Of a stretch of DNA of 64,000 bases, positions 17,038-44,508 are shown in pieces (position 1 is the stretch's first letter; each line of letters starts with the position of its first letter). This DNA is from Macrostomum lignano (taxonomy: Eukaryota). The notes below the pieces were generated by a model that worked only from the letters and a program-made list of their open reading frames with translations, was not told where the DNA came from and searched no databases. The stretch spans positions 12,867-76,866 of the forward strand of contig NIVC01003785.1 of the NCBI GenBank assembly GCA_002269645.1, written 5' to 3'. The position numbers were made by a program, and so were the translations under genes.

Positions 17038-20000
17038 TCATCGGCGCCAGTAAAACACAGCCGCAGTCGTTGCTAAGGAAGCTGCCGAGAGCAACAGGCC
17101 GCCTATCGATTGCCGAGCCGCCTGATTTACTTCCTCCGCCAGTGGCCTATGGAAGGACGCCATATTGCCATTCGATTCGTCTATCGGCTGATCGCCGGAC
17201 CCGTCGTCCACCCAATCCTCGATCTTCTCGGCCGGCCCCGGCCTGTGCCGCCGCTTGCACTCGCCGGCCGTTGTCGGCACCATGTCGCTGTTGACGCACT
17301 TCATTCCGGAGTACTGGGCAAAGTAGTTGGGCAGCATTACGCAGTGGCCCATGCGGCAGCGGCTGCCCGTGGGCCTGTCGCACGGCCAGTTGGATTGCAC
17401 CGAGACGTCTTGCGGGCAGATCGGCGATTTGCCATCGCAGAACTCAGGAAAGTTGCATCTTGAATTAAGGAAAGTGACTGCGGGATAAGATTCTACTCAT
17501 TCATGAATTTATTATCTCCCTGCAAGCTCCAATGCACAGCAATCAAGTATTATCTACAAATTTCATATGGGTTTGTAGTCTAATCAAATATTATCCACGA
17601 TCTGCAAGGACCCTATCCAGCAGGCTCAGACTATCAACGCAAACCTGGGATCTTCGGCCAGTCTGCACAGAGTGCCCGCGGCCAGCGGGCTGCACGAAGT
17701 CGTGTTGCAGCAGTCGCCAGTTGCGCACGCTGCGCCTTTGACCAGCTTGCAGACGTCGGCCTGGCAGCAGCGATCCTTTCTGCAGGCGAGCGGCCCGCCG
17801 CAGTCGCACTCTTCGCCAGGCTCGACAATCCCATTGCCGCAGGTCGGTCCCCAGTCCTTCGAGTACTCAACGGTGAAGATGTAGCCATCTGGAGGTCATT
17901 GAGTTGGATCAAGTGGGACTAGCGAGGACTAAATATCGCCTCTGTACACTGACTCTCGCCCTACGACCATCGTTGGATTCCCAGTGCGGCCACATTTCCC
18001 TCGTATTTCAGGACTTGTGTACACGAATTGGCCGGAAGTTTGTCACGCGATTCACAGCCATGAGGGCCAACCCTCAAGGCATAGCGAGTGTACATGTCTG
18101 ACTATTAGAAAGTCACGTTCACTGTACACCCTGCGAGAATGTGTGTGTAAGTGCGTGCCTGTGTACAATATTGGCACGCTTGTACATGTATGTGCTCAGG
18201 AGTGTACAATATTGGCACGCTTGTACATGTATGTGCTCAGGAGTGAGTAGATTATCCTTGCATAAGCCGTTGGCATAAGTCACTCACTGGTGCTCGAGAA
18301 AGGCTCAGCTGTCGCAGACAAGCAGGCTGCGTCTAGTGCCAGGCTGTCCAGCGCGTCCGCGACTTTGTTGATGCCGCAGTTGGTCCAGCCAACGTACTTG
18401 CTGCCATCGTTGCTGCGTCCTACAGAGTCGTCCATCAGGCACTGGGAAAATTTGCACTGGCATTTATCCACGGAGTCGTGATTCCCGCCCAACCTGTGAA
18501 CCAGCTCGTGTGCCAGGGCGAAGCCCGACAATTTTATATAATTCGGCCGTTTCGTGTCCAGCTGCGGGGCAGTGATAATTGATTGAGAAGTTTCAATTGA
18601 AAAGTGACGTTCTGAGATTGCGAAACTTTCCAGAATAATGAATGTGAATTCATATTCAAATGTTAATTAGTTGAAGGACTCCCTCAAAAAGGCCTAACTA
18701 AAAGCGCAAATATGACTTGAAATTTCCACCCGAAAATGTCGAATGATACTTTCGCAACAAGATGAGTCAACTACTTTAGGCTACTAATAGCTGGACACAG
18801 CAGCTCAGCTGGTAGCGCGTCCGACTCTCACGTCTCCAAGAGAGTTCGAAGTTCGAAAAAAAAGACAAATGGAGGTCTCAGACAATAGACTGGCACTCAT
18901 AGCATTCGCCACAGAGGCGAATAAAAGAGAAAAACCACAGGAGCCAGTAAATCAACTCGCAAAGGTGAGCTCCAGAGCAAATGGAATCTCGCCATCAGAA
19001 GCGACCGCCCAACACACTGGCAGAAGAGAGAAGAAAACAATGAGCAGCGCCCTGGACACTGGCGAAAGCCAACCAAGCGAGACGGCGCGGCTGACAGGCA
19101 AGACTGGAGGGCTTAGAGGGGGCGAGATGTGACAGAAAAATGGCGAGCTCTGGATGAGAAGAGAGCTGTCCCAACACAAGAACGGCAGCCTACGCCCGCA
19201 GGCTTGACGACCGACGGTTCGATGGACAATTTAAAGTGTACAAGAGACAGTGAGAGAGAGACAGACGGAAATGCATTCAGCTTTAATAGATTCTTTACTC
19301 TCATCAAATGTATCCAGCTCAACCAATGCGATTGCGCACCTCACAAATTACTCTAGCCTCTGCAACTTAGCAACATGATAATAAACAGACTCGCTGCACA
19401 AGTATAGGGCGCTCTGTCCCGATTAAGACGAGTTGCTCGCTTGGCAATACAGTAGATACAAATAGTAAACTGAGTACGTATCAATATTAAAGTTTCGACA
19501 CGTTTCGCACTCCAAGGTGCATCTAGAGGTCAGGTTATTGACGAGAGAGCAGAAAAGATTTGTGTACTGAATAGCACTACTAGTTGCGGCTTTTATTAGA
19601 AGCAGGGAGGCTGTATACACAGCGGCGCACTTCACCGACATTGTCACACGAGAGGCATTACTGCCCATTCCACCGACCCCCTGAGCAGGCACACACTCAC
19701 AGGAGTGTACAGCGGCCCTGACTTTATTTATCGTTAGGCATGTACACTTCACTGCGCCTTGGATGTTGGCCCTCAAGGCGTTAATTGCACGAGCAGACAC
19801 ACGTCGAGATTCCAATTCAGCCTCAAATTAATGTGACTGCATTTGGAATCGAGCTTGGGACGCTGGCACATCAGAACGCCGCGGCCCACTAAGTACTGCG
19901 GATTATAACGGAATTTAAATGGTTGAAGGTGGAAAAAGACTGATAAAAATTTGACTTGGGTTACCAGAGGCTAATAAAGTGCAGTTTTAATACAATCTAC

Positions 20001-23000
20001 GTGTCAATAGGGCACAAGAATGTGAAGTGAGGCTTCAATGATCTGAGTTTGAAATCAGATTGACGTCTTGTCAATGATTGTCTGACACTCGTCGGATTTG
20101 ACTTCAATTTCAATTTTCCATGGCTTAAAGCTTCTACATGTATTCCTTGCCGATGAAGATGCACGTGAACAGACATCCCGACGGCGACAGCGGAGAAAAA
20201 TTGTCAATGGTTTTACGAGAATCGGAACCTCGAGCCGGAACGGCATCTCTTTTCGGTGTGCTCAGGCTTTGCATTGTTTATAATAATTAATAATATTAAT
20301 AATAATAATAATTGATCACACCTGCCCTAATAGACAGATGTGCAACCGACAGCTCAGCCGCAGCTATTGCGCGGCGCATCTGAAGGCTGCGTACGGCTGT
20401 TCAGTCCAAGGACTGGGGGGTCGCCACACACAGCCTTAATTACCCCAGCTAATGCTGGCACCCATTTTACAGCTGGGTGAACTGAAGCAATGCAGAGTTG
20501 AATCTCTTGCTCAATGACACAAATTGTTCCAGTGGAATCGGGAATCGAACCCCCGACCTTCAAGTCGTGAGTTCTACGCTCTGACCATTAGGCTACAACC
20601 GCACTGTCTATAGAGCTGATTAAATCTCTATGCTATACCAGCACTCATTTTTCTTCAAATATTCAAGTGATAATAAGTTAACTGAATCGCTTAAGAACAA
20701 AGGCTCTTCTCACGGCAGGCTAGATCAGTGTTTAGAGAATCGAGAGAGTTGAAACACCGGTGCACAGGACATGTACATACTCGTATATTGCATGAGAAGC
20801 ATCGCCAGCTACTGAGACATCACCTTACAGAAAGCGACAATCGGGTATTGGATGACAGGTGCCGGCATTTAAATGGCACAAGATAGCTAAGATGGTAGAA
20901 AACAGCCCCCTGGTAGCTACACTGTTTAACAGCCACACAGCTCACAGTGACGTATCCAAGACAGGTCGGCCGACCGAGCTGATGCTTGCAGACGTTGCCT
21001 TCTGAATCTGAAGCCGTGGAGTTGTCGATACTTCGTGCGCTGCAATGCAAGGGATGTGATGATGCGTTGCTGAGAGGCAGTTAGGAAAAACAGCTGATGC
21101 CGAAGCCTAAACAGCTGGTATTAAATAATGCTTACGTGAATACAAAGATGCAGTTAACGATTTGCTCAACAATAACCCCATAGTTGTTGTACGTGTAAGT
21201 ATCTCGAATGAACTTGAGCTCGTTCCGGCTAGGAATGTCATAATCTCTAGCCAATAGATTCCAAGGCAAGTGCAGACTGGTCACCATCAAGTAGGTATTT
21301 AGTGGTCTGAGAAGCTACAAAATTATTAATATTTGCTATAGTCATTCAAGGACAAGGCAAACCTCGCAGAGCAGTGATCAAAGCTTACCGTGTTTGCGTA
21401 GTTGACCACTTGTTTAGCTATGTTGCTCATTTCAGCTTGGTTCCGATTCGTGCGTTTCTCCTGTTTGAGAATGTTTTCGGTGATGCGGCTGCTATGAGAA
21501 AAAGAGCTGCTACTGTAGAGTTTCATTCATTCATAAAACGCTACTGTAAGTAGAGTAACGCAAAAACGCGCAGAAAAACTTAAACTATGAATCACGTTAC
21601 TATTTATGTTTCGCAAAATTTTCCTATAAATACAAGCCAAAATTAAAGCGGAAATCTCAGACTCGGAACAGCCTCAGAAGAGACTCATCCAGAACAACCA
21701 CTGGAAAGGGGCTACATCTCTGAGAGAAACGTATACCGATTGGCAAGACTTTGTTGAAGTCGTTATTTGATTATTGAGTGTTGAGTCATTTTCGGCCGTG
21801 ACTGATCAGTTGATTTCTGTTGAGTTATTGAATTAAAGGCCTCCATATTCATATTCCTAAGGGATTGGATAGGATCCACTGGACCGATTCCGATACTCTT
21901 GACGATTATCGATTTTTATTGACTTTGGCACCCTGGAGTACCAGATCGAGGCACACGACTCCCATTCCGTTATTTCTAGAAGAAGACGCCCTTTCTGGAG
22001 GACCTCGCGCTATTATTAGGGCGCATCTCTGATTCTGATTACTGATCTCGAGGAATACATTCCAAGAAACTCCGGAGGAAGACTACATTGAGGAGACGAG
22101 CTCTGCCGACCTGCCCGACAAAGAGGAAGAGCCCGCGACAGTACTTGATCACTAAATTCTGTTCCCAGACTTGCGGTCTGAAAGTATTTCTTGAGCGACT
22201 GATCACCACCCCTAAACTCTTCACTACGAGCGTAGGAAGCGAGAAACTTACAAACTCCCTGTCCAAGTAGAGATGCAGCTTGACAATGTAGGGCCCGAAT
22301 TTGGTCAGGAATCTGAACTGCTGGCTGAGGCTGATGTTCGCCCGAGTGAACTGCAGCCGGCCAGCTTGGTTGATTTTTCTAGAGCGCGGCGTTGCGTATC
22401 TGCGAGTCCTGCTGAGCTGCTCCATCGGCGGCGCAGTGAGGATTGCAGTTCGTGAGTGGTTTTGCGTGAGCAAGTGACTGAATTCGTGACTGGGTGAGAC
22501 AGATGTGCAACCGATAGCTCAGCCGCAGCTATTGCGCGGCGCATCGGAAGGCTGCGTACGGCTGTTCAGTCCGAGGACTGACAGGGGGGGGGTCGCCACA
22601 CACACCCTTAACTACCCCAGCTAATGCTGGCACTCATTTTACAGCTGAGTGAACTGAAGCAATGCAGAGTTAAGTGTCTTAAGTGTCAAGGATACAAATT
22701 GTTCCAGTGGAATCGGGAATCGAACCCCCGACCTTCAAGTCGTGAGTCCAACGCTCTGACCACTAGGCCACAACTCCTGCTCGAAAGCTCATGAAAGTGT
22801 TTTTTAATAAATTGAATAAATTCAGAATACACGAGTACTCAAGGACGACTCAAGTAGGAGGACGGGAAACCTCGTTTCTTTGAAAATTTTTGAAGGCAGG
22901 TTTTCCAAAAAATACACTACGAGATAGGAAATTTTCATTTTTTCAGCACAAAAATTGTAATTGCTTTTGATAGGAGGCAGATTCAGTGTTCATCTTTTGA

Positions 23001-23389
23001 TATGCTGTGCCTTTCTTATTGCTCTATTGATATTCATAAAGCTTTTCGTTCAGAAAGTTAGGAATCTAAGATTCTAGTAATTTGCACGTGTCTTCTGAAA
23101 AACCAAAAGGCTTTATGAATATTAAAATGTTCCAAGAAATGAGGTTTCCCGTCCTCCTACTTGAGTTGTCCTTGCGAGTATTCGGAATGAGAGTTAGTGA
23201 GTAAGCTGTATTACTGTACCAGGTACATTGCCTTACCTGTTCAGATGCGGATGCTGCCTCTGTACCAGCCGGGTCAGGACTTGCGTCATCATTGTGCTCT
23301 ACCGACTCACCGAGGCAAACAGACGCCTCTGGAAGCAGCGCAGCGAAGATGCTCGCGCTGACAAGTAACCAAGTGGCTAGCAAGTGCAT
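17038..23389 (-). CDS. ADAM-like reprolysin metalloprotease-disintegrin, copy A (~516 aa). Exons 23389-23311, 23259-23237, 22416-22252, 21460-21389, 21314-21136, 21039-20946, 18561-18288, 17888-17645, 17458-17038
   Basis: Signal peptide, furin site RTRR, zinc motif [12 protein letters not shown], Met-turn CLMD, disintegrin [15 protein letters not shown]...CCNTTSC...CNFPEFCDG and a hydrophobic C-terminus. All junctions are GT-AG and in phase; total 1551 nt. Confidence 0.9.
19640..19890 (-). mobile_element. Older dispersed repeat, probably a second tRNA-SINE (family 2); related copies or fragments at ~17935-18245 (+), 43185-43310, 54995-55150, 45860-45950, 32005-32055 and 5415-5460
   Basis: Shared blocks GAGGGCCAAC..CAAGGC..GTGTACATG and GCTGTACAC...GTGCCTGCTCAGGGG, with a B-box-like GxTCGATTCC upstream in several copies. 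Confidence 0.55.
20281..20601 (-). mobile_element. CORE-SINE family 1, near full-length with (ATT)n tail
   Basis: Same head and core as the other copies; ends in TTAGGGCAGGTGTGATCAATTATTATT... Confidence 0.85.
22497..22777 (-). mobile_element. CORE-SINE family 1
   Basis: High identity to the copies at 20281 and 56734. Confidence 0.85.
22833..23183. mobile_element. MITE with ~42-bp TIRs in intron 2 of ADAM copy A; related sequence at ~43315-43500 and ~43895-43975
   Basis: AAGGACGACTCAAGTAGGAGGACGGGAAACCTC (22841-22873) is inverted at 23141-23173. Confidence 0.75.
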
Positions 23390-24015: not shown

Positions 24016-27000
24016 CTATAGTATGCATTCAGATTCGAATGAATATCGGAATTCCAACAGGTAAGGCAAGATGCCCAGAGCAACGGAAGCCGCGACAACC
24101 AACGGGCCGCTCCGCAGATGCTGAGCAGCCTGGTCAGTTTCTTTAACTATCGGCTTTTGACTGGCTTTAGCGGCGCTATCCGATACAGTCTCGTTGAGAC
24201 TGTCCGTCCATTCCTCGATCTGTTCAGCAGGGCCGGGGTTGTGCCTTTTCTTGCACCCGCCATCGCTGGCCGGCACCATCCAGCCGCCGTGGCACTTCGG
24301 CCCGCTGTACTTGGCGACCCGTCTCGGCGGCAGGCAGTAACCAAGTCTGCACAGGCCGCCCGTCGCCTTGTCGCACAGCCAGTCGGGCAGCACAGAGACA
24401 TCCGGCGGACAAACTGACGATTTACCATCGCAGAACTCCGGGAAGTCGCATCTGGAAGGAGGTGACAAGTGAATCTGGCTGACGAATTTCTCGCGAATTA
24501 TTCACGTTTGACCCTCATAAGCTCGTTTTAACCGATTAAATCAAGTACATTTCCAACAGAGCGGACCAAATAATATTAATATTACTATTACTATTATTAT
24601 TATTACTAAGCAAACCTGGGATCTTCGGCCAGTCTGCACAGAGTGCCCGCGGCCAGCGGGCTGCACGAAGTCGTGTTGCAGCAGTCGCCAGTTGCGCACG
24701 CTGCGCCTTTGACCAGCTTGCAGGCGTCGGCCTGGCAGCAGCGATCCTTTCTGCAGGCGAGCGGCCCGCCGCAGTCGCACTCTTCGCCAGGCTCGACAAT
24801 CCCATTGCCGCAGGTCGGTCCCCAGTCCTTCGAGTACTCAACGGTGATGCTTTGTCCGTCTGGAGATCACACAAAATTTGAATGGTTGCAATTTCAATGT
24901 TCAGAAAGCCCGTAATCAAAACTTGGGCCGACAGGCTTCCCAATGTTTAACAACTTACAAAATGCAGTTGGATCCACAGTTGAACGTGGAAGAAACCCTC
25001 TGGCCAAGACTACCCAGCCGTCTGATGCGAGCTAGTAAGCAAACACAGAGCATCTGAAGGCTGCTTACGGCTGTTCAGTCCAAGGACTGGGGGGTCATCA
25101 CTCACCACACACCCCAATTGCCTCAGCTAATGCTGGCACCCATTTTACAGCTGGGTGAACTGAAGCAATGCAGAGTTAAGTGTCTTGCTCAAGGACATAA
25201 ATTGTTCCAGTGGGATCGGGAATCGAACCCCCGACCTTCAAGTCGTGAGTCCAACGCTCTGACCACTAGGCTACAACCCCTGCTATCAGATTAATGATGT
25301 TAAGACCTCGCTTCTTTCCAATGCGAACGCCCCAGCAAGCAAAGTTGGGGACATGAGGACCCAGCCTTAATATACAATGGAATTTGCGATGAACCAGTAT
25401 AAAACCTTGTACAAGTACAACCCAAGAAAGAAAGTTCGCTTATCCTCCTCGCCCTTGTTTTCTGTCCCACCCTTGGCCTGCTACTCGAATCTCGACTTTG
25501 GAGACTTACGGAGCTGAGTATAACAGGGACTAAGTTGAACGAAAACTTGACTTAAACAATAATCTGACCTTCAACTTTTGGCCTACTTGGCCTGGCACTA
25601 ACGCTTGAGCATTGAATCGTGGAACAAAAGCCACAAAGACTAGAGCAAACAAAGCGTACAGTATTGTACTCTGGCTCACCCTCGCGAGCTCCAGAGCTCC
25701 AGTTGGCGGACAGGCAGGCCTTCCCAAGCGCCAGAGCATCGAGAGACTCGGCCAGCTTGTCGATGCTGCAAGTGGACCAGCCAATCGGACTTTTCTCATC
25801 GTCCATGCCTACGTATTGGTCCATCAGGCAGCGGGAGAACTCGCACCGGCACTTGTCGTCGGCGTTGTCGTGGCCGCAGCCAACTCGGTGGCTGATCTCG
25901 TGGGCCAGAGCGACTCCAGCTGTTACGATGTAGTTTGGCTTGTTCGTCTCCAGCTGTGAATTATGAGCAAGAGTTATCATTCAATGCGTAAAAACAGGCA
26001 GAGGTCAAGCACCAGAACGGAGCCCAAAGTAAAGCTTTGGATCAAGCAAAACTACAATTTATCATTTGTGGGACAAGTTGATAAAAATGCCGCAAATAAA
26101 AACAATGGAATTGGATTTGCAAGTCAACTTAAGCCTCTTACATCATGGAGAGGCTATAGTTACGCCAAGTTTCAATTTTCATCATAAAAATGGTTCATTC
26201 AACCGTTCCCTCACCATGACGAAGCCTTTGCATTTCGGCTTGCCGTAGTCTTTCTTGCAAGGGTGACCGGATGAGTCCGAAATTGAGTAGTTCATATGGT
26301 CCCGGCCTCTGCAAAATTGAAAGAAAAAATCTAATTGAAAGTGCTTCAGCTCAGAAACTGTAAACAAATTGACACGAATTCAGCAATATTTTTATTAACT
26401 CACAGGAAAATAAAAACGCAATTAATGACCTCTTCAAACATGTAAGAGTAATACTGGTAGTTGTAATCGTTCAGAAAATATAATATGTCATTGCTTCGTG
26501 GTTCCAGACTTGACCCGACATGCTTCGACGGAATGTGCGTGCTCGCCACCATGATGTAGAAGTTGAATGGCCTCAACAACTGCAATCACAAGCAAGGTGT
26601 TTGATGTGAGCAACTTTAACATAAATTAAAAATAATTGTTACAGGCTTCAGAGCAAGTCTAAGTCTCCGGAGGTTTCAACTTCAGTCAGAGTCACTGTGC
26701 AAGTGTCAGGGTCGGTCAGTGCAGCTTGTGGAGTCAGGGTCGGTCAGTGCAGCTTGTGGAGTCAGGGTCGGTCAGAGTAGCTTGTGGAGTCAGGGTCGGT
26801 CAGAGTAGCTTGTGGAGTCAGGGTCGGTCAGAGCAGCTTGTGGAGTCAGGGTCGGTCAGAGTAGCTTGTGGAGTCAGGGTCGGTCAGAGTAGCTTGTGGA
26901 GTCAGGGTCGGTCAGAGCAGCTTGTGGAGTCAGGGTCGATCAGTGCAGCTTGTGGAGTCAGGGTCGGTCAGAGTAGCTTGTGGAGTCAGGGTCGGTCAGA

Positions 27001-28482
27001 GTAGCTTGTGGAGTCAGGGTCGGTCAGAGCAGCTTGTGGAGTCAGGGTCGGTCAGAGCAGCTTGTGAAGTCAGGGTTGGTCAGGATCATACCGAGTTGGC
27101 AAAGTTGACGACCTTCTTTGCCGTCGCGATCAGGTTTTTAGTGCTTTTCATCAGGCTCTCCTAAAACAGTGTTTAAATTTGATCTGATCACGTTTTGGAT
27201 TCTCCTAGCATAGCAACAAAGCAATCGTGAATCAAAGTGCATTGCATACCAGATCTTTTTCTAGGTAGAGATGCAGCCTAATTATATAAGGCCCGAATTT
27301 GGTCAAGAATCTGCTCTGCTGGTTTATGCTAACATTGACGCGAGTGAACTGGAATCTGTACTTTAGATCTACTTTGTGATTGCGCATTCGAGGATCGTAT
27401 CTGCGCACCCGACTTAGCAGCTGAAATATTTTAGTGCGGTTTAAATGAGTGAACTTCAATTCACGAAGTGTGAGTTTATGAGTGAGGTTATAAGTGAATT
27501 TATGAGTGTCTGTAAGTGAGTTGATGAGTATGTTCAATAGCGAGTTCATGAGTGAGTTTATGAGTGAGTTCAATATTAAGTTTATGAGTGAGTTTATGAG
27601 CCAGTTTATGAGCCAGTTAATGAGTGAGTGGTTTTCAGTGCTACAAGCAAAGCCTCTCACCATCTCAGCCGGGGTCTCCGTTGCCGGTTCTGCAGGTTTG
27701 CAATGGAATGGTTTTGTTAAAATTTAATTTGCTGAAGTTAGGATGAACTTCACTGCAATGAAGCAGAAGCATTATCATCTTTTGAGGGAAAAATTGTTCT
27801 AATTTTTCTGGAATTGGTTGCAGATCTTACTATTTGAGCATTGATTGTCAAGCGCACACACAACATTGCACAAATACTAAAATAACTTGTTGGGCCACTC
27901 AGCTCATTTACGTGTAAGCTACTTTCAGTTCAGTAGTCAGTTAAACATACGCATTTTAATGTATTTTTAAAGCCTAGGCTCATTTATTTGCTCTCTTACC
28001 CCCAGCTTAAACCCTCCAACCGCGCCTTTCCACAGTACCCCCCGCCCCGCCCCAATTTTTATTGCCTTTCTCGGAATTCCAGCCTAAAGCTGCCATGTAC
28101 ATTTCAGTGGACTGGCTAATGTACATTATTGCTGAACCAATTAGCAAGCTGTTTACGTCTGCAAGCTTGGGCTTCTAAGCTTATCAAAGTCATTTCAGCT
28201 GCCTTTATTTTTATAAAATAGCTTATGTATTCTTCATTGCTACTGAACTGAAAGTAGAAAGCTGTTTTACTAAGTATATATGCCTGAGTGGCCCATCTAG
28301 TTATTTTAGTATCTGTGAGCGCACCTAAGATGCATCGACCTACATTTAATATCAGACAAGTGTCAGGTTAAGATAGCAATTGATCCACCACCAGCCAAGT
28401 GCCTACCTTGATTTCCAACGATCAAATTAAGCACCACCAAAGCACTGGCGAAAACCAAACAGATGTTTTTTAAATGCAGCAT
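24016..28482 (-). CDS. ADAM-like metalloprotease-disintegrin, copy B (~522 aa). Exons 28482-28407, 27689-27661, 27420-27250, 27160-27092, 26579-26404, 26308-26215, 25953-25680, 24859-24616, 24451-24016
   Basis: Signal peptide [23 protein letters not shown], furin site RVRR, zinc motif [16 protein letters not shown] and a disintegrin domain. Same exon phases as copy A; total 1569 nt. Confidence 0.9.
25051..25280 (-). mobile_element. CORE-SINE family 1 (3'-shortened)
   Basis: Same tRNA head and core. Confidence 0.85.
26705..27085. repeat. 28-bp minisatellite in ADAM B intron 4
   Basis: GGAGTCAGGGTCGGTCAGAGTAGCTTGT, about 13 copies. Confidence 0.95.
27465..27630. repeat. 12-bp degenerate repeat (ATGAGTGAGTTT); same motif inverted at 33745-33965
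   Basis: Direct inspection. Confidence 0.85.
27871..28315. mobile_element. MITE family (TIR CAGATACTAAAATAACT..TGGGCCACTCAG), copy 1
   Basis: ~30-bp terminal inverted repeats plus an internal inverted CTACTTTCAGTTCAGTAG; three copies in the window. Confidence 0.8.
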
Positions 28483-29128: not shown

Positions 29129-29350
29129 ATGAAGGCTGCGTACGGCTGTTCAGTCCAAGGACTGGGGGGTCGCCATACACACCCCCAATTGCCCGAGCTA
29201 ATGCTGGCACCCATTTTACAGCTGGGTGAACTGAAGCAATGCAGAGTTAAGTTTCTTGCTCAAGGACACAAATTTTTCCAGTGGAATCGGGAATCGAACC
29301 CCCGACCTTCAAGTCGTGAGTCCAACGCTCTGACCACTAGGCTACAACCT
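29129..29350 (-). mobile_element. CORE-SINE family 1 (3'-shortened)
   Basis: Same tRNA head and core. Confidence 0.85.
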
Positions 29351-29604: not shown

Positions 29605-30545
29605 CGTTAGGTTTTCTGTGGAGATGTCAGGATCGGTCAGGTTTCTGTGGAGGTGTCAGGATCGGTCAGGTTTCTGTGGAGGTGTCAGGATCGGTCAGGT
29701 TTCTGTGGATGTGTCAGGATCGGTCAGGTTTCTGTGGAGGTGTCAGGATCGGTCAGGTTTCTGTGGAGGTGTCAGGATCGGTCAGGTTTCTGTGGAGGTG
29801 TCAGGATCGGTCAGGTTTCTGTGGAGGTGTCAGGATCGGTCAGGTTTCTGTGGAGGTGTCAGGATCGGTCAGGTTTCTGTGGAGGTGTCAGGATCGGTCA
29901 GGTTTCTGTGGAGGTGTCAGGATCGGTCAGGTTTCTGTGGAGGTGTCAGGATCGGTCAGGTTTCTGTGGAGGTGTCAGGATCGGTCAGGTTTCTGTGGAG
30001 GTGTCAGGATCGGTCAGGTTTCTGTGGAGGTGTCAGGATCGGTCAGGTTTCTGTGGAGGTGTCAGGATCGGTCAGGTTTCTGTGGAGGTGTCAGGATCGG
30101 TCAGGTTTCTGTGGAGGTGTCAGGATCGGTCAGGTTTCTGTGGAGGTGTCAGGATCGGTCAGGTTTCTGTGGAGGTGTCAGGATCGGTCAGGTTTCTGTG
30201 GAGGTGTCAGGATCGGTCAGGTTTCTGTGGAGGTGTCAGGATCGGTCAGGTTTCTGTGGAGGTGTCAGGATCGGTCAGGTTTCTGTGGAGGTGTCAGGAT
30301 CGGTCAGGTTTCTGTGGAGGTGTCAGGATCGGTCAGGTTTCTGTGGAGGTGTCAGGATCGGTCAGGTTTCTGTGGAGGTGTCAGGATCGGTCAGGTTTCT
30401 GTGGAGGTGTCAGGATCGGTCAGGTTTCTGTGGAGGTGTCAGGATCGGTCAGGTTTCTGTGGAGGTGTCAGGATCGGTCAGGTTTCTGTGGAGGTGTCAG
30501 GATCGGTCAGGTTTCTGTGGAGGTGTCAGGATCGGTCAGGTTTCT
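29605..30545. repeat. Highly homogeneous 29-bp minisatellite between ADAM B and C
   Basis: GGAGGTGTCAGGATCGGTCAGGTTTCTGT, about 32 copies. Confidence 0.97.
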
Positions 30546-30745
30546 TTGCAAGTGTCAAAGTCGGTCACAGCTGCAGGAATTATAGAATGAGCTATGATAA
30601 AAAGTATATTTTTGGTTTGCAATGAAGAAATTCTTACAAGGGAAAGGTTAAAACCGCTAGAGCTCATTGTTTACTCAGCTCTGCAATATGCCTGACTATG
30701 CAATATGCCTGCAATATAGGGCAGGTGAAGCTACAAAATTCACTA

Positions 30746-33700
30746 TCAACTCGGCAGCAGAACTGAAACTAATACAACAGTGGAAGCCACCGCCAGCCAG
30801 AGTTCACTACCGACATGCCGAAACCCCCGATCCTGCGTCTCTAACACCGGCCGATGGTTCACCGTCGAATTAAGCTTTGAATCTGTATCTAAAGTGGAAT
30901 TATTCTCCTTGGAATCCTCGTTGTGCTCAAACGCAAACACGATGTCGTCCTTTGGCAGCGGGTCCACCCACTCCTCCAGCTGCTCGGCGGGACCCGGCTC
31001 GTGCATCGGTTTGCAGTCGCCAGCCGTGGTTGGCACCGTCTTGCCGAGTTCGCACCGCGGCCCGCTGAACTTGGCGCCCCACCGTGGCGGCAGGCAAGCG
31101 CGAAGGCGGCACCGCTGGGTCTTCTTCCCGTCGCACGGCCAGTCGGACATCACCGAGAGGTCCGGAGGACACGTCGCCTTCACGCCGTCGCAGAACTCAG
31201 GGTAGTCGCATCTGAACACGCGATGTGCAGAAAGCTTTGGAGTAACACTAATGAGGTTTCGGTGGTACATTTTTTAATGCATGAAAATCCATTCAAAAAA
31301 TAAATATTCGCCAAAAGGGTTGTAATTGGCACCTTGGCGCAGAGCCGTCGGCAACATGGTCCCACAAGCAGCACTGACAAGCGCGCCAATACTGTACACA
31401 GACATGCACTCATACTAATGGTGCAGAGAAGTGACCAGGTGTAGAAACTTTAACTGAGTGTGATGTGAGCACACAGAAAGATAAATACTACTGAATAAAG
31501 AGCATGAGTAGTTTGAAAGCACTTGAAGCGATGTCTCTGCTATCTCACCAAGATTCTACACGGTAAACCTGCTGCAAAACGGACCTGTGATCAACAGCCA
31601 GCCTGCAGAGGACGCCGCTAGCCAGTGGCGTGCACGAAGTCATGTTGCAGCAGTCGCCGAATCCGCAGGCTGCCCCCGCGACCAGTTTGCAGGTGTCTGC
31701 CTGGCAGCAGCGGTTGTTCTGGCAGGCGAGCGGTCCGCCGCAGTCGCACTCTTCGTTGGGCTCGACAATGCCGTTGCCGCAGGTCGGTCCCCAGTCCTTC
31801 GAGTACTGCATCATGATGCTGCGCCCGTCTGTGAAACATGCATAGCGGGTGCCTTATTAAGAAGGGGGGGAAGCCCGATTTAGAGCTTCAGACTACAGTC
31901 TTCAATGGATTTATCTTGTCGGAACAGTCAACCAAAACTCCTTGGAGTTGAGTTTGTCTGCAGGCAACTTTGGGTCAGCGATCCGCAGTCAGCGAGGATG
32001 CAATCAGTCATGCTCATTCCACTGACACCTGAGCAGGCACACATTCACACAGGGTTAATTTTCTTGCTCACCGTTATGAGGCTTCCAGTTCCACTTGGCG
32101 GACAGGCAGGCCTTGCCCAGCGCCAGAGCATCGAGAGAATCGGCCATACTGTTGATGCTGCAAGTCGACCAGCCAATTGGCTCAGCTTTGCCTTCCGTGA
32201 CCACGTATTCGTTCATCAGACATCGTGGGAAATGGCACTGGCAGTACTTTGAGTCGTGACTGGCGCCTATCCTGTGGCTGAGCTCGTGGGCCAGGGCCAG
32301 TCCCGCCGTCTTGATGTAGTTCGACTTGCTAAGTTCCAACTGCGGAACGGGGTGTCATGCAGGAAAGTTTTATTCTGATAAGCTGCTCTTGTGAGTGATG
32401 CAGCCTGGGTTGGAGCCTACACCGCTAATGATAAAGTAAATAAGCCTTTATTGTTGCTAAGTTCGTCAATAATCGTCAATAGTCGCTAAGGAATCACCAA
32501 TGGTCGCTAAGGAATCGTCAATAGTCGCTAAGGAATCAACAATGGTCGCTAAGGAATCGTCAATAGTCGCTAAGGAATCAACAATGGTCGCTAAGGAATC
32601 GTCAATAGTCGCTAAGGAATCAACAATGGTCGCTAAGGAATCGTCAATAGTCGCTAAGGAATCAACAATGGTCGCTAAGGAATCGTCAATAGTCGCTAAG
32701 GAATCAACAATGGTCGCTAAGGAATCGTCAATAGTCGCTAAGGAATTATCTAGGGTCGCTAAGGAATCCTCTAGGGTCTTTGATATCCTCTAGGGTCGCT
32801 AAGGTATCCTCTAGGGTCGCTAAGGTATCCTCTAGGGTCTTTAAGGAATCCTCTAGGGTCGCTAAGGTATCCTCTAGGGTCGCTAAGGTATCCTCTAGGG
32901 TCGCTAAGGAATCCTCTAGGGTCGCTAAAAAATTACCAATGGTCGCTAAAGAATTACCAATGGTCGCTAAGGATTTACCAATGGTCGCTAAAGAATTACC
33001 AATGGTCGCTAAAGAATCACCAATAGTCGCTAAAGAATTACCAATGGTCGCTAAGGATTTACCAATGGTCGCTAAGGATTTACCAATAGTCGCTAAAGAA
33101 TCACCAATAGTCGCTAAAGAATTACCAATGGTCGCTAAGGATTTACCAATAGTCGCTAAAGAATTACCAATGGTCGCTAAAGAATTACCAATGGTCGCTT
33201 AGGATTTACCAATGGTCGCTAAAGAATTACCAATGGTCGCTAAAGAATTACCAATGGTCGCTTAGGATTTACCAATGGTCGCTAAAGAATTACCAATGGT
33301 CGCTAAAGAATTACCAATGGTCGCTAAAGAATTACCAATGGTCGCTAAGGATTTACCAATAGTCGCTAAAGAATTACCAATGGTCGCTAAAGAATTACCA
33401 ATGGTCGCTTAGGATTTACCAATGGTCGCTAAAGAATTACCAATGGTCGCTAAAGAATTACCAATGGTCGCTTAGGATTTACCAATGGTCGCTAAGGAAT
33501 TATAAATGGTCGCTAAGGGATCGTCTATGATAGCTTCGCTCCCCAGGATGCGATAATGATCTTGGCTGGTTTTATCAGCTTTTCAAGCTTTTTCTCTCAC
33601 CGTAACGAATCCAATGCATTCTGGTCGGCCATAAAGGTCCTTACAGAGCTCGCCAGTGGAGTCCGACATCGTATAGTTCATGTTGTCGCGGCCTCTGCGA

Positions 33701-36700: not shown

Positions 36701-39700
36701 TCTTTGGATATAGATGGGTGGGGGGATTCTTTGGATATGGATGGGTGGGGGATTCTTTGGATATGGATGGGTGGGGGATTCTTTGGATTTGGATGGGTGG
36801 GGGATTCTTTGGATATGGATGGGTGGGGGATTCTTTGGATATGGATGGGTGGGAGATTCTTTGGATATGGATGGGTGGGGGATTCTTTGGATATGGATGG
36901 GTGGGGGATTCTTTCGATGGGGACTCTGTGAATGAGGGACTCTTTTAATAGGGATTCTTTTGAAGGGGATTCTTTGCATGTGAGATGTTATGGATGGGCA
37001 ATGCATTGGATGGGAAATTCTTCAGATAGGAGAATTCCTTGAATGGGGAATTCTTTGGATCCGGGATTCTATTGATAGGGGTTCTTTGGATGGGAGACTT
37101 TTTGATATGGATGGAGGTCGAGGATTTTTTGGATAGGGATGGATAGGGGGATTCTTCGGATCGGGGATTCTATCGATGGGGGTTCTTTGGATGGGGATTC
37201 TCTGCATGTAAGATTCTATGGATGGGCAATTCTTCAGATAGGAGAATTCCTTGAATGGGGAATTCTTCGGATCGGTGATTCTATCGATGGGAGGTTTTTT
37301 GGATGGCGGATTCTTTGCATGTGAGATTCTTTGCATCGTGGATTTTATGGGTGGTGTATTCTTTGGATGAGGGATTCTTTGTATGGGAGATTCAGTTGGG
37401 TGAAATTTTATTGCGTGGGAAAACTGTGGCTGGAGTTTGGACGGAAAGCCTCAACGGGAGTTGGAATTGGCTAGCTGAGGAAATTGCTTCATTAATCTTG
37501 CTGGGGGTACTTTCTACCAGGGGTTGCTTGCTATCGGAAGGACGCTTGCTCTTGGGGTATGCTTGCTCGGAAGAGAATTTTAAGATGTCAAGATTTACAA
37601 GGGGAATTATTGAGATACATGTATAAAATCTTACCTTGGGGAATTAATGACATGTGAAGGCTTAAGTGGGACTTGCTGAGATGCCAAGGCTTGTGGGGGG
37701 AATTGCTGAGGTGTGAAGGCTTAAAAAGGAATTGCTGAGGTCTTAAGTCTCGGGGAGGGGAATCGCTAAGATGTCAAGACTTACTAGAGGAATTACTGAG
37801 ATATGAAGGCTTACTGGGAGAATTACTGAGATATCAAGGCTTGGGGAGGGGAATTACTGAGATGTCAAGGCTTTGGACGGGGAGAAATTGGTAACATGTC
37901 AAGGCTTGCGCCGGAATTGCTTAGATGTCAATGCTTGGGGAAAATTTCTGAGGTGTCGAGGCTTGGGGAAATTGCTGAGATGTTAAGTCTTGGGGGAATT
38001 CTATGGATTGATGATTCTTTGGATGAGGGATGCTTCTAATGGATAAATTTGAATAGGTGATTCATTGGGCAATTTCTTCGGTGGGGCATTGTTTCGATTG
38101 AGGGTTTTTTGAATGGGGGATTCTTTAGATGAATGATTCTTTAGATGGGGGTTATTTGAACGGGGGTTCTTTAGATGAGGGGATTCTGGATTCTTTGGCC
38201 AATTATGCTTTTGATGGGGGATTATTTAAGGATGTGAATTATTTAGAGGGGGGATTTTTTGGAGAAGGAATTTTTTGGATATGGATGGTTAAGGTGATTA
38301 TTTAGATAGGAATGGATGGGGAAATTCTTTGGATAGGGATGAATAGGAGGATTCTTGGGATAGGGATGGATGGGGGATTGTTTAGATAGGGATGGATGGG
38401 CGATTCTTTGGATAGGGATGGGTGGGGGGATTCTTTGGATAGAGGGTTTCTGTGGATGAGGGATTTCTTGAATAAGGGATTTATTGGACGGGGAATTCTT
38501 CAGATGGGAGGATTCCTTGAATGGGGAATTCTTCGGATCGGGGATTCTATCAATGGGATGGGATGGGGATGGGACGGGAAGGATTGGTATTCTTTGCATG
38601 TGAGATTCTATGGATGGGCGATTCATTAAATAGGGAATTCTACAGATAGAGGATTCCTTGAATGGGGAATTCTTCGGATCGGGGATTCTGTCGATGGGAG
38701 GTTCTTTGTATGGGATTCTTTGGATGAGGGTTTTTTGCACGTGAGATTATTTGCATCAGGGACTTTATGGATTAGAGATTCTTTGGATGGGGGGGGTTCA
38801 GTTGGGTGAATTTCTTTTGCGTGGGAAAACTTTGGTAGGAGTTCTGACGGAAAGCCCCAACGGGGGTTGGAATTGGCTAGTCCTATATACTAAAAATGAA
38901 AATCTTGCTTGTTTGTACGCAATCGATTAGAGAAAAAATGGCTTAACCGATTTTCATGAGACTTGCACTGTTCGATCAGAAATTTTCCCGTGACGGTACA
39001 TGCATCTTGGCTAAGAAATTGCTCCATGTTAAAGCGATTAAATATTCGAAAAACATGCTTTTTTGCAAAGGTCAAGCAAACTTTTCGACTTGAAATGCAT
39101 TGTAAGAATGCTAGAGAAAAAACTGACTGGTTGAATTCTGATTCTGAAATAAATTGCATCATAAATGAATTGTAACTCCGACTTGAATTGCGTCACAGTA
39201 TTGAAAATGCAGTGTGGAAGCGTAGCACCAGACGTGATTTAGATTGCGTAACCATATTGTTATCTGATACTGACTGACTGAGAAACTGATTATGTCATAA
39301 CTGCTTCGTGTGATTTACTCTATGCTTGGATTTTAAACTGTTGAATTATATATATATAAGGGCAAAATTTGATGTTATCAAAACGATGAGAGCTAGCCTA
39401 GAGGTTAGCAAACTGAACTGCTAAATGCAGCGACGATGGTTCGAATTTTCATAGAGTATAATTTTTTTAATTAAAGCTTTTCAATGTCAGGAAAACTAAA
39501 AGACTTTTTAAAAAGAAGCGTCATGTAAAAATCATAGAAGCGTCATGTAAAAAATCGTGGAAGCGTCATTTAAAAAATCATAGAAGCGTCATTTAAAAAA
39601 TCATGGAAGCGTCATATAAAAATCATAGATGCGTCATTTAAAAAATCATAGATGCGTCATTTAAAAAATCATAGAAGCGTCATGTAAACAATCATAGAAG

Positions 39701-42700
39701 CGTCATGTAAACAATCATAGAAGCGTCATGTAAACAATCATAGAAGCGTCATGTAAAAAATCGTAGAAGCGTCATGTAAACAATCATAGAAGCGTCATGT
39801 AAAAAATCATAGAAGCGTCATGTAAAAAATTATAGAAGCGTCATGTAAAAAATCATAGAAGCGTCATGTAAACAATCATAGAAGCGTCATGTAAAAAATC
39901 ATAGAAGCGTCATGTAAACAATCATAGAAGCGTCATGTAAAAAATCATAGAAGCGTCATGTAAAAAATTATAGAAGCGTCATGTAAAAAATTATAGAAGC
40001 GTCATGTAAACAATCATAGAAGCGTCATGTAAAAAATCATAGAAGCGTCATGTAAACAATCATAGAAGCGTCATGTAAAAAATCATAGAAGCGTCATATA
40101 AAAATCATAGAAGCGTCATTTAAAAATCATAGAAGCGTCATGTAAAAAGCATAGAAGCGTCATGTAAACAATCATAGAAGCGTCATGTAAACAATCATAG
40201 AAGCGTCATGTAACAATCATAGAAGCGTCATGTAAACAATCATAAAAGCGTCATTTAAAAAATCATAGAAGCGTCATATAAAAATCATAGATGCGTCATT
40301 TCAACAATCATAGAAGCGTCATATAAAAATCACAGAAGCGTCAAGTAAAAAATCATAGAAGCGACGGGAAGCGTCATATAAAAATCGTAGAAGCGTCATA
40401 TAAAAACCATAGAAGCGTCATGTAAAAATCGTAGAAGCGTCATGTAAAAAATCATAGAAGCGTCATGCAAAAAATTATAGAAGCGTCATGTAAACAATCA
40501 TAGAAGCGTCATATAAAAATCATAGAAGCGTCATTTAAAAATCATAGAAGCGTCATGTAAAAAATCATAGAAGCGTCATGTAAACAATCATAGAAGCGTC
40601 ATTTAAAAATCATAGAAGCGTCATGTAAAAAATCGTAGAAGCGTCATGTAAACAATCATAGAAGCGTCATGTAAAAAAAATCATAGAAGCGTCATGTAAA
40701 AAATTATAGAAGCGTCATGTAAAAAATCATAGAAGCGACGGGAAGCGTCATATAAAAATCGTAGAAGCGTCATATAAAAACCATAGAAGCGTCATGTAAA
40801 AAAATCATAGAAGCGTCATGTAAAAAATCATAGAAGCGTCATGTAAAAACTCAGGGAAGCGTCATGTAAAAAATCATAGAAGCGTCATGTAAAAAATCAT
40901 AGAAGCCTCATGTAAAAAATCGTAGAAGCGTCATGTAAAATATCATAGAAGCGTCATGTAAACAATCATAGAAGCGTCATGTAAAAAATAATGGAAGCGT
41001 CATGTAAAAAATCGTAGAAGCGTCATGTAAACAATCATAGAAGCGTCATGTGAAAAAAATCATAGAAGCGTCATGTAAAAAATTATAGAAGCGTCATGTA
41101 AAAAAATCATAGAAGCGTCATGTAAACAATCATAGAAGCGTCATGTAAACAATCATAGAAGCGTCATTTAAAAATCATAGAAGCGTCATGTAAAAAATCA
41201 TAGAAGCGTCATGTAAACAATCATAGAAGCGTCATGTAAAAAATCATAGAAGCGTCATGTAAAAAATCATAGAAGCGTCATGTAAAAATCATAGAAGCGT
41301 CATGTAAACAATCATAGAAGCGTCATGTAAAAATCATAGAAGCGTCATGTAAACAATCATAGAAGCGTCATGTAAAAATCATAGAAGCGTCATGTAAACA
41401 ATCATAGAAGCGTCATGTAACAATCATAAAAGCGTCATGTAAACAATCATAGAAGCGTCATGTAAACAATCGTAGAAGCGTCATGTAAACAATCATAGAA
41501 GCGTCATGTAAAAATCGTAGAAGCGTCATGTAAACAATCATAGAAGCGTCATGTAAACAATCATAGAAGCGTCATATAAAAAAATCATAGAAGCGTCATG
41601 TAAACAATCATAGAAGCGTCATGTAAACAATCATAGAAGCGTCATGTAAACAATCATCGAAGCGTCATGAAATAATCATAGAAGCGTCATGTAAAAAGCA
41701 TAGAAGCGTCATGTAAAAAGCATAGAAGCGTCATGTAAACAATCATAGAAGCGTCATGAAAAAATCATAGAAGCCTCATTTAAAAACTAATGAAAGCATC
41801 ATTTAAAAAATTAAGAAGCATCATGGAAGAATAAAAGAAGTGTAATGTAAAAATCAAAAGAAGCGTCATGTCAGACATGAAGGATGTCATGTAAAAATGA
41901 AATGCAGCTATAATGCTGTGCTGGGAAGAAAAACTGAGACGTAAAGGCTCTCAGAGAATAACTGAGATTACGAAGGGGGGGGTTGTTTCTGGATCTCAAA
42001 GCAAAAGTCAGAAGCTACTTCAAAGTTCATGTACTTTACTCAATTTTTTATTGCATTCTTTGTTGGCTCGCCATGGGGGGTGCTGATAGAAGAAGAGTCA
42101 TGTAAAAAATAAAAGTAGCACTATGTATACATAAAAGACAAGTCATGTCGAAGTTAAAAGATTCATTTGGGAATTGCTACGATGTCAAAGCTTGGTGGAA
42201 ATCGTTATAGTGCTGTGATTCTTAAAGAAGGAATCACTAAAATGTCAAGGCTTAGGGGAGAAGAATTGCTGAGATTTCAAGGCTTTAGGTTGGGTTAAAG
42301 TTAGGTTTAGGTCAGGTGTGGGTTGAGGGTTATATTTTATCGGGTTTCAAGGTTAACAGTGGATTTTTTAGATTTCAAGGTTTATGGGGGCCATCGCTGA
42401 CATGTCAAAGCTTACGGACGGGGGGGGAATAGCTGAGATGTCAAGGCTCACGGGGGTATAAATGAGATTTCAAGGCTAAAGTCAGAAGCTACATGTAGTT
42501 TATTGAAAACTTTTTATTACATTATTTGATGCCTCCTCAGGCGAGGGATCGCTGATAAAAAAAGCGTTATGTAAAAAATAAAAGAAGCTTATCGCTATAA
42601 TGCTGTAGTAGTGCTATAATGACTCTTAGAGAGAATTACTGAAATTTCAATGATTTAGGGTTAGGTTAGGGTTAGGGTTAGGGTTAGGGTTAGGGTTAGA

Positions 42701-44508
42701 AGGTTGACAGATATTTTTAGATTTCCAAGGCTTATTGGGGGCATTGCTGAGATGTCAAGGGGGGAAGTTGATATGTTAAAGCTGGGGGGGGGGGGAATTA
42801 CTGACATGTCAAGGCTTACAAGGTTTGACAGGAGATTTTTTAAGATTTCAAGGATACATGTAGCTTATTAAAAAAACGTGTATAGCATTTCTTTGGCTCC
42901 CCAACGGGGGGCGTAGATTGCTAGTAAAAACTAAAAATTAGTTAAAGCCAGACATTCTTCAAATTAAAATTTCTTCCCTCAAAGCCAGCCAGTTGCATAG
43001 AACTCAGGCCTGAATAAACTCAAACAACAGACTCACCGTGTTAGCAAAGTTGACAACTTCTTTCGCTACTTTTATGGCGCCGTCTGAATTTCTAGAAAAG
43101 TGGCCATCCTACAGTGCATGGTTTGTGAGTCAGTTTGCAGTCGGACTTGAGAGCTGCCAACCAAAGAGTCTAGAAGTCATGCCAAGTCAGCTGGCCCCTG
43201 AGCACGCACTCAAAACGGGTGTGTACAGCGGCCCCTGACTTCTCATCGCGTCAGGCATACACACACTCCTCGCCCTTGTGAGTTGGACCTTGCGGAATCG
43301 AACCAAGGACCAAGGTCCAAGTAGAAGGACGGGAAACTAGGTAACTTTGAATTTTTTAGGAGGCAGTCTTTAAGAAATACATGACGGAGAATGAAGGTTT
43401 CATTTTTCAGCAAAAAAATTGTTATTGCTTTTCGCATAGGAGAGACCCAAAGTTCATCTTTTGATATGTCCTACCTTTCTGATAGTTCTGTTGATATTCA
43501 CAGAGCATTTCGTTTAGAAAATTTGGCTTTTATGTCTTACAGATATTTTACAGATGGCACAACTCGACTCATTGGTATTATGAATCTTTTTTATCATTCT
43601 GTTACACATCTTGTTACACAGTCACAAGGCAAGACAGAATATGTGGGTATCTTACCAATCCTTTGTCCAAGTAGAGATGCAGCTGAATAATGTAGGGACC
43701 ATTTTTTGTCAGGAATCTGAACTGCTGGCTGAGGCCAACGCTAACGTGAAGTAGTTGAAACCTGTCCTTTAAAGGCTTTTTAAATTCGCGCATAGTTGCT
43801 CTGCGGACACGTCTGAGCGGCTGAAACTGAAATGCCGTGTTGCGTCACTGAGCATGCGAGGTTATGAGCGAGTTCACGAGTGACATATGATCAAAGCAAG
43901 GACGGGAAATCTCGTCTATTAGAAAACATTTGGGGGCTGCTCTGCGCCAAAAATATACTTTGTACACTACGGAGATAGCACATAAAAGCGATTAATTTTT
44001 TCATTGGTTTTTCATTGGTTTCTTCTGTAAAAACGTTCTTATGAAGGTGTATTTAAAATTGTACATGCCTTCTTCTATTTAAAGTAAAAATTCATAAAAA
44101 ATATGACTGGGAAGCTTTTTTTAACAAATAAAAGACTTGATTTGAATCCCGTCTCTCTCCTTTAATCGTCTTTGGATCAATGTTCTCTATGTTGAAGATC
44201 TACATTTATGCATCAAAATGCAGGTGCATAGATGCTAGTTAAATAGTCACACCTAATAAATTTTGCACTCACCATTTCTGACGATTTCAAAGGCTCTGGT
44301 AAATAGGTGTCTTCTAAAGAGTGAAAAAATTAGTGTTTAGATTGGTTTATATCAAAACGTTTGACGTACGATATGTTGTGCCATAAAATCGAAATTACTA
44401 AATTATAATCGGCAAAAGTATACTGTCACCTTCTTGGCCTGATGCGATGGTAAGCAGAGTAATCAACGTTACGACTGAAGCGCAATAGAAGGCAAGCGTC
44501 CAACGCAT
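30746..44508 (-). CDS. ADAM-like metalloprotease-disintegrin, copy C (~530 aa). Exons 44508-44430, 44295(or 44313)-44273, 43820-43656, 43108-43037, 34236-34058, 33694-33601, 32339-32072, 31828-31585, 31211-30746
   Basis: Signal peptide MRWTLAFYCASVVTLITLLTIASG, furin site RRVRR, zinc motif HELSHRIGASHD, CLMN and a disintegrin domain. Exons are homologous one-to-one with A and B; intron 4 is 8.8 kb. Confidence 0.87.
32470..33520. repeat. 21-bp minisatellite with blocks of variant units (ATGGTCGCTAAGGAATCAACA), ADAM C intron
   Basis: About 50 copies, with alternating dimers at the left end. Confidence 0.95.
33745..33965. repeat. 12-bp repeat (TCACTCATGAAC)
   Basis: Direct inspection. Confidence 0.9.
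34379..34818. mobile_element. Same MITE family, copy 2
   Basis: High identity to 27871-28315. Confidence 0.8.
36000..38800. repeat. Composite degenerate G-rich repeats (GGAATTGCTGAGATGTCAAGGCTT blocks and GGGGATTCTTTGGATATGGATGGGT blocks)
   Basis: Two motif types alternate in a duplicated layout; a purer 26-bp run lies at ~36640-36910. Confidence 0.85.
39520..41800. repeat. 22-23-bp satellite (AAAAATCATAGAAGCGTCATGT), roughly 100 copies
   Basis: Direct inspection. Confidence 0.97.
42655..42698 (+). repeat. Interstitial telomeric (TTAGGG)n tract, about 6-7 units
   Basis: TTTAGGGTTAGGTTAGGGTTAGGGTTAGGGTTAGGGTTAGGGTTAG. Confidence 0.9.

Follow-up and report, generated by a model that had tools for sequence, protein, structure and literature searches.

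Three tandem ADAM-like protease genes of the flatworm Macrostomum lignano encode no prodomain

Vertebrate ADAMs from which the prodomain has been deleted are generally inactive. ADAMDEC1, a reduced ADAM with a metalloprotease (M) domain, a truncated disintegrin (D) region and no Cys-rich, EGF-like or transmembrane parts, is soluble, keeps its prodomain and carries Asp in place of the third zinc-binding His. The ADAM prodomain is credited with aiding folding and with keeping the enzyme latent, and snake-venom metalloproteases (SVMPs) and ADAM22 are made with a prodomain of ~200 amino acids (aa) and a complete Cys-rich domain (PMC4885070). ADAMTS13 has a propeptide of 41 residues without a cysteine switch, which confers no latency and is dispensable for secretion and function (PMC4885070; PMC6706451 citing Majerus et al. 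2003). Here we describe a tandem triplet of paralogous ADAM-like protease genes, A, B and C, all on the minus strand of a Macrostomum lignano contig (NIVC01003785.1 of assembly GCA_002269645.1). The window analysed comprises 64,000 nucleotides, positions 12,867 to 76,866 of the contig, and all coordinates below refer to it. No prodomain is encoded in any of the three genes and there is hardly space for one.

Gene models and domain architecture

We built the gene models from open stretches and exon borders around the three HExxHxxGxxHD motifs of the window, all on the minus strand, and the R-x-R-R motifs upstream of them. The triplet is delimited by the stop codon of gene A at 17038 and the start codon of gene C at 44508, precisely the limits set in the initial annotation. 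Gene A (Mlig013992.g2; 23389-17038, minus; 516 aa) has nine exons at 23389-23311, 23259-23237, 22416-22252, 21460-21389, 21314-21136, 21039-20946, 18561-18288, 17888-17645 and 17458-17038. The nine exons of gene B (Mlig026616.g2; 28482-24016, minus; 522 aa) lie at 28482-28407, 27689-27661, 27420-27250, 27160-27092, 26579-26404, 26308-26215, 25953-25680, 24859-24616 and 24451-24016, and those of gene C (Mlig019806.g2; 44508-30746, minus; 537 aa as annotated) at 44508-44430, 44313-44273, 43826-43656, 43108-43037, 34236-34058, 33694-33601, 32339-32072, 31828-31585 and 31211-30746. GT-AG borders are present in 24/24 introns between the 27 exons, intron phases are identical across A, B and C, and exon sizes are nearly equal (76-79, 23-29, 165-171, 69-72, 176-179, 94, 268-274, 244 and 421-466 nt). 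The exon of 69-72 nt encodes helix A (K.VVN[FY]AN) and was recognised via the UniRef model A0A1I8FIT5 (P0001); only once it is included does the Pfam Reprolysin coverage reach profile positions 3-190/200. Gene C yields 537 aa with acceptors 44313 and 43826 and 529 aa with the alternative acceptors 44295 and 43820. In gene A, intron 1 (23260-23310, minus, 51 nt) is in frame and free of stops; its retention would add 17 aa to the pro-segment, and the older model A0A1I8H487 (P0087) reads through it. A fourth copy or pseudogene fragment was not found within the window.

The translation of gene B is identical, residue for residue, to PAA49799.1 (BOX15_Mlig026616g2), whose GenBank gene range has the same length of 4467 nt. 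That of gene C, with acceptors 44313 and 43826, is identical to PAA49800.1 (Mlig019806g2), and the gene range of 13763 nt is as in GenBank. The partial entry PAA49798.1 corresponds to the C-terminal 310 aa of gene A, its coding sequence (CDS) starting in exon 7; all three entries are placed on NIVC01003785.1. The annotation of this assembly was not made ab initio but from a genome-guided RNA-seq transcriptome (StringTie/TACO plus de novo assembly), with gene ends set from trans-splicing and poly(A) reads and open reading frames (ORFs) called with TransDecoder (PMC5730564), so that the CDS of genes B and C are transcript-derived. The nine-exon models proposed in the initial annotation therefore match RNA-seq-derived CDS for B and C, whereas for gene A this holds for exons 7-9 only. 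The locus is present in three copies within the assembly, which is known to be substantially redundant (PMC5730564). Every copy has intact ORFs with 2-10 substitutions, and these spare both the pro-segment from the signal peptide to RxRR and the RxRR motif itself. We found no paper that mentions Mlig019806, Mlig026616, Mlig013992 or Mlig005741, nor a description of prodomain-less ADAMs in flatworms in the literature searched.

All three proteins begin with a signal peptide encoded by exon 1, followed by 12-25 aa, an RTRR or RVRR motif, ~37 aa and the reprolysin domain; then come the disintegrin domain, a Cys-rich stub of ~25 aa, an acidic linker, a C-terminal hydrophobic stretch and a final 0-14 aa. 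The order of signal peptide, RxRR, reprolysin and disintegrin had been noticed before and is borne out by the models of all three genes, by Pfam and by the GenBank CDS of B and C. The signal peptide exons, each ending in phase 1, lie at 23311..23389 in gene A (minus; read from the sequence), 28407..28482 in gene B (minus) and 44430..44508 in gene C (minus), the last encoding MRWTLAFYCASVVTLITLLTIASGQE. In gene B the top 10-residue Kyte-Doolittle window scores 2.96 and starts at residue 9. The spacer between signal peptide and RxRR had been given as 14-17 aa; its actual length varies from 12 to 25 aa with the choice of acceptor, and in the annotated gene C protein it reads ...GQEEDTYLPEPLKSSEMFQPLRRVRR. 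It contains no conserved Cys and therefore no cysteine switch. The furin-type motif is RTRR in gene A (22399..22410, minus, residues 37-40) and RVRR in genes B (27400..27411, minus, residues 39-42) and C (43800..43811, minus, residues 46-49 of the annotated protein). R-x-R-R is invariant in A, B and C while the neighbouring residues have diverged, which argues that the motif may be in use. The ~37-aa segment that follows contains an invariant QQ.RFLTK.GPYI.

The catalytic motif HExxHxxGxxHD is intact in all three genes, as is the Met-turn CLM, which follows the zinc site by 11-13 residues: the zinc site lies at 18475..18510 (minus) in gene A with CLM at 18441-18433, at 25867..25902 (minus) in gene B with CLM at 25830-25822, and at 32253..32288 (minus) in gene C, where it reads HELSHRIGASHD, with CLM at 32222-32214. 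Pfam identifies Reprolysin (PF01421) from residue ~79 with E values of 2e-11 to 2e-15, and a disintegrin domain of the ADAM/SVMP type (PF00200) over the full profile (1-75/75, E about 1e-18), encoded by exon 8 of gene A (17645..17888, minus), gene B (24616..24859, minus) and gene C (31585..31828, minus). With E values up to 10, Pfam reported no Pep_M12B_propep, ADAM_CR (PF08516), EGF or TSP1 in the three proteins, so the expected Reprolysin and Disintegrin were recovered without a propeptide profile, and the Cys-rich profile was missing as well. Single-sequence AlphaFold2 (AF2) modelling gave a predicted local distance difference test score (pLDDT) of 33, and the alignment-based model of B, with pLDDT 80-93 through the M and D domains, was used instead. 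A Foldseek search of this model against the PDB returned P-III SVMPs (VAP1 2ERO, VAP2, bothropasin) and the ectodomains of ADAM22, ADAM10 and ADAM17 as best matches (E down to 9e-22); for the P-III SVMPs and ADAM22 the match covers M and D with E values of 1e-21 to 1e-19 and ~345 aligned columns. Isolated M domains (P-I SVMP, ADAM8) match it at TM 0.78-0.81. The structure modelling suggested at the outset thus places B close to P-III SVMPs and ADAM ectodomains, and since the matches span the M and D domains, the M domain is predicted to be complete. The C-terminal hydrophobic stretch is present in all three proteins and in B forms a predicted helix at 495-511 in the AF2 model.

Absence of a prodomain

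Introns 1 and 2, which separate the signal peptide from the RxRR-bearing exon, measure 51 and 820 nt in gene A, 717 and 240 nt in gene B and 134 and 452 nt in gene C. The larger introns are made up of low-complexity DNA or of dispersed repeats that have further copies in the window, and the longest open stretch within these introns of any gene has 83 codons; the suggestion that they are too small or too repeat-filled to hide a prodomain therefore holds. Upstream, 626 nt separate the start of gene A from the stop of gene B, and 2263 nt, much of them a 29-bp minisatellite, lie between the start of gene B and the stop of gene C. An alpha-tubulin gene on the same strand (47091-48627, minus) is found 2.6 kb upstream of gene C. 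The same exon layout recurs in three diverged paralogues, and both transcript-derived CDS (B and C) open with a signal peptide.

Neither Pfam on three-frame translations of introns 1-2 and all upstream DNA, nor tblastn with four prodomains including that of the M. lignano ADAM PAA73542.1 (best E = 0.78), nor a custom prodomain hidden Markov model (HMM) run on the 2570 open stretches of all six frames (best E = 1.3) detected a prodomain. By the same three approaches no stand-alone prodomain gene was found within the window.

The absence could be an annotation artefact, with further exons upstream or in introns 1-2 encoding a divergent prodomain and with mis-assigned "signal peptide" exons. A divergent flatworm prodomain split over several exons would indeed escape profile searches, and GenBank has no annotation for the 5' part of gene A. 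We nevertheless regard this explanation as very improbable: the CDS of B and C come from RNA-seq-derived transcripts and begin with good signal peptides, the layout and phases of exons 1-2-3 are common to all three paralogues, introns 1-2 are either short or repetitive and contain no open stretch above 83 aa, and neighbouring genes bound the space upstream. It would also find support in older WormBase/UniRef models that join the three genes, but these omit the signal-peptide exons, as is typical of tandem-gene chimeras. A0A1I8FIT5 (727 aa) and A0A1I8H487 (1475 aa) fuse two or all three of the tandem genes; at each fusion the final exon of a gene runs on into exon 2 of its neighbour. We rejected them as real proteins. 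They are chimeras, able to mislead surveys of domain architecture.

Repeats shape the introns and intergenic DNA of the triplet. A dispersed repeat of ~280 bp, with copies 87-90% identical, is present at least six times in the window (22497-22774, 20332-20599, 25050-25284, 29131-29348, 6749-6969 and 56738-56994), several of the copies in ADAM introns; ARAGORN called no tRNA in the dispersed repeats. A second repeat of ~450 bp occurs at 27869-28315, 34377-34819 and 57944-58362. Large minisatellites occupy 29613-30557, 39514-41871, 32477-33518 and 36573-36918, with 33 copies of a 29-bp unit between B and C, and 104 copies of a 23-bp unit and 50 copies of a 21-bp unit inside gene C. Minisatellites inflate intron 4 of gene C to 8.8 kb, compared with 512 nt in B and 74 nt in A, and they cause the strong GC skew at 36-40 kb.

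The other genes in the window show no evident functional link to the triplet. Besides alpha-tubulin they encode an alkaline phosphatase in a single uninterrupted open frame of 582 codons (14186-15931, plus), a GLE1-like protein (58865-59683, plus), a BBS2 N-terminal domain (61964-62548, plus) and a pyridine nucleotide-disulphide oxidoreductase (61-2198, minus). Upstream of gene C, a 177-codon open stretch (44993-45523, minus) has no Pfam match. It contains GHKSAESVQRY, which we take to resemble the C-terminal end of tyrosine recombinases, and is possibly the remnant of a mobile element.

Ancestry and comparable proteins

An exhaustive phmmer search with residues 1-316 of B against 1.84 billion representative proteins gave 20 matches. 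Two of these are clusters of the triplet genes themselves; the next is PAA73542.1 of M. lignano (Mlig005741, P0092, 1031 aa; E = 3.7e-17), and the remaining matches are ordinary ADAMs with E values of 6e-8 or weaker. The proposal of a lineage-specific subfamily is thus supported in that only M. lignano genes were recovered before canonical ADAMs. Because this exhaustive search gave no others, the triplet subfamily is, on present sequence databases, known only from M. lignano. PAA73542.1, the closest relative of the triplet, is a canonical ADAM, with an N-terminal pro-region of ~225 aa that bears a C.Y.G...S.....C.G..G......Y motif, with RLKR and RKKR sites, and with Reprolysin, Disintegrin, ADAM_CR, a transmembrane segment and a tail. 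It shares with the triplet HExxHxxGxxHD, the Met-turn and a disintegrin domain whose loop is of the CRxxxxxCDxxExCDG type; over 414 aligned residues the identity is 31%. In both, a convertase motif precedes the M domain and leads into a homologous N-terminal extension (..VTKAGPF.. in PAA73542.1, ..LTKFGPY.. in the triplet). In contrast to it, the triplet proteins lack the ~225-aa pro-region, the EGF-like region and the cytoplasmic tail and retain ~25 aa of the Cys-rich domain; the alignment stops ~25 residues into the ADAM_CR of PAA73542.1, and the triplet proteins have 516-537 residues as compared with 1031.

Alignments of B with PAA73542.1 begin at B63-70 and PAA73542.1 230-237, within the post-convertase segment of each; the segment of PAA73542.1 that aligns to B reads VTKAGPFLMELYLIA. 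As PAA73542.1 has this homologue in addition to its long pro-region, the post-furin segment predates the loss of the prodomain. By this homology, the "35-aa segment" appears as an N-terminal extension of the mature M domain common to PAA73542.1 and is probably not a substitute regulator for the prodomain, which weakens the regulatory role that the initial annotation had envisaged for it. A related explanation is that the N-terminal ~55-60 aa, comprising the pro-segment and the post-RxRR segment with its predicted strand FTRVNVS, act as a mini-prodomain that shields the cleft or aids folding and is later removed or displaced, so that latency is kept. Purifying selection on the post-furin segment (dN/dS 0.26-0.39) and its invariant QQ.RFLTK.GPYI would agree with such a role, as would the strand that AF2 puts at residues 60-66, where model confidence is low. 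Solved mature enzymes have few residues before strand beta-1, and the post-furin segment is longer. We still consider a mini-prodomain unlikely: the homologous segment follows RKKR in a protein that already has a long pro-region and hence belongs to the mature M domain, a conserved Cys and a second convertase consensus are both lacking, and the arginine aligned to RKKR lies in LKYR, QAGR or LKDR.

Synonymous sites are saturated between the paralogues (dS 1.1-2.7). The dN/dS ratio is low in the catalytic (0.18-0.22) and disintegrin (0.17-0.26) domains and higher, at 0.5-0.8, in the C-terminal linker. These values point to old and functional genes held by purifying selection, and to a prodomain-free layout that would be older than the triplication. 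Exon 8 of A and B (17645-17888 and 24616-24859, minus) shows 97% DNA identity compared with 55-69% in the other A/B exon pairs, a pattern suggestive of recent gene conversion between these neighbours. The genes could also be maintained for adhesion or ligand binding through the disintegrin domain, or a prodomain or chaperone could be supplied in trans by another gene; loss of the prodomain would then say little about autonomous folding. In favour of these readings, conservation is highest in the disintegrin exon, where A and B have been homogenised. Many ADAMs of mammals are non-proteolytic, and the prodomains of ADAM10 and ADAM17 can act in trans experimentally. Both variants are unlikely in our view, given that HExxHxxGxxHD with its catalytic Glu and the Met-turn are intact in 3/3 genes, that dN/dS of the catalytic domain is ~0.2 and that the window holds no stand-alone prodomain gene.

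Among described enzymes ADAMTS13 is alike in having a very short propeptide that lacks a cysteine switch and is cleaved off by a furin-type convertase. The likeness is one of mode of action and not of membership: ADAMTS13 is secreted and has TSP1 repeats, a spacer, CUB domains and a disintegrin-like fold, whereas the triplet has a true ADAM/SVMP disintegrin (PF00200), no TSP1, a shorter pro-segment and a C-terminal hydrophobic anchor. The reductions of the prodomain in ADAMTS13 and in the triplet are independent. The P-III SVMPs are made as soluble precursors with pro, M, D and Cys-rich domains; compared with them, the triplet lacks the prodomain and the full Cys-rich domain and has the C-terminal hydrophobic anchor. 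Unlike ADAMDEC1, it has kept HExxHxxGxxHD and dispensed with the prodomain.

Apparently prodomain-less M12B proteins are also encoded in crustaceans, where the M12B domain starts within ~20-70 residues of a signal-peptide-like N-terminus. Copepod membrane proteins of 360-450 aa (Neocalanus P0075, Calanus P0076, Lepeophtheirus "ADAM10" P0166; also P0072 and P0070, the set being drawn from copepods and marine metatranscriptomes) have no prodomain, and their catalytic domain begins at residue 21-43, directly past a signal-peptide-like N-terminus; this family is documented by complete transcriptome ORFs, an NCBI protein of Lepeophtheirus and many metatranscriptome contigs of ~1.5 kb. The krill protein CAL4131229.1 (P0099) likewise proceeds from a signal-like segment through VVRR to Reprolysin from residue 73 and Disintegrin, without a prodomain. 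The copepod and krill proteins are only distantly related to the triplet (E 1e-4 to 1e-5 against gene C), and those of copepods differ in being ADAM10/17-like (Reprolysin_2/_5): their disintegrin domain is confined to its first part, and they have a cytoplasmic tail besides a transmembrane segment. Because these proteins also lack a prodomain, the triplet is not a new kind: the direct passage from signal peptide to catalytic domain is rare among ADAMs but not unique, and prodomain loss seems to recur in invertebrate M12B lineages. The crustacean proteins and ADAMTS13 weaken the idea that the triplet is unique; we found no description of the copepod and krill prodomain-less proteins in the literature.

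Proposed mechanism and significance

Taken together, we consider it rather probable that the triplet represents old, functional, Macrostomum-specific ADAM-like genes whose products carry a vestigial, convertase-cleaved propeptide, are anchored in the membrane and have no cysteine-switch latency. Such genes would descend from a canonical ADAM and would have lost its prodomain of ~200 aa together with the EGF-like domain, the cytoplasmic tail and all but a stub of the Cys-rich domain. The protein would enter the endoplasmic reticulum and, late in the secretory pathway, a furin-like convertase would cut at RxRR and so remove the vestigial pro-segment. The C-terminal hydrophobic segment could then hold the enzyme at the cell surface, serving as a transmembrane helix without a tail or as a glycosylphosphatidylinositol (GPI) signal. 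Folding would be autonomous, prodomain-based latency would be missing and control would lie elsewhere, for example in expression, inhibitors or substrate access, as in ADAMTS13.

Several points weigh against this interpretation. Exons 1-6 of gene A rest on paralogy, as a transcript-derived CDS covers only exons 7-9, and we found no independent cDNA-like contig carrying the exact proteins. Confidence in the AF2 model of B is low towards the N-terminus, with a pLDDT of 46-69. The homology searches have low power: an HMM built without Macrostomum sequences scores the pro-region of PAA73542.1 at E = 0.18 and Pfam misses it too, so that the absence of the prodomain rests mainly on gene structure and transcripts. 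Finally, cleavage at RxRR, proteolytic activity, surface location and type of anchor are predictions from sequence and models.

The gain in knowledge is moderate, as ADAMTS13 already provides an M12B enzyme without a functional propeptide, crustaceans have similar M12B proteins with a short N-terminus, and the activity of the triplet is a prediction. A more far-reaching view, which we put forward tentatively, is that the triplet proteins are natural minimal ADAMs of M and D domains that fold without an intramolecular chaperone, reach the surface on a minimal, possibly GPI-type anchor and act as constitutively active sheddases once a peptide of 12-25 aa has been removed. The prodomain would then be dispensable in ADAMs as it is in ADAMTS13 and, together with the copepod and krill proteins, its loss would be a recurrent route in the evolution of invertebrate M12B proteins.

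RNA interference is feasible in M. lignano. Transgenesis has also been established in this species (PMC5730564), and the question can be tested in vivo because both tools are available. If true, a prodomain-free ADAM that selection maintains in three diverged versions would offer a natural minimal M-D scaffold on which to study which features of the M domain permit folding without help and what restrains activity when no cysteine switch is present.

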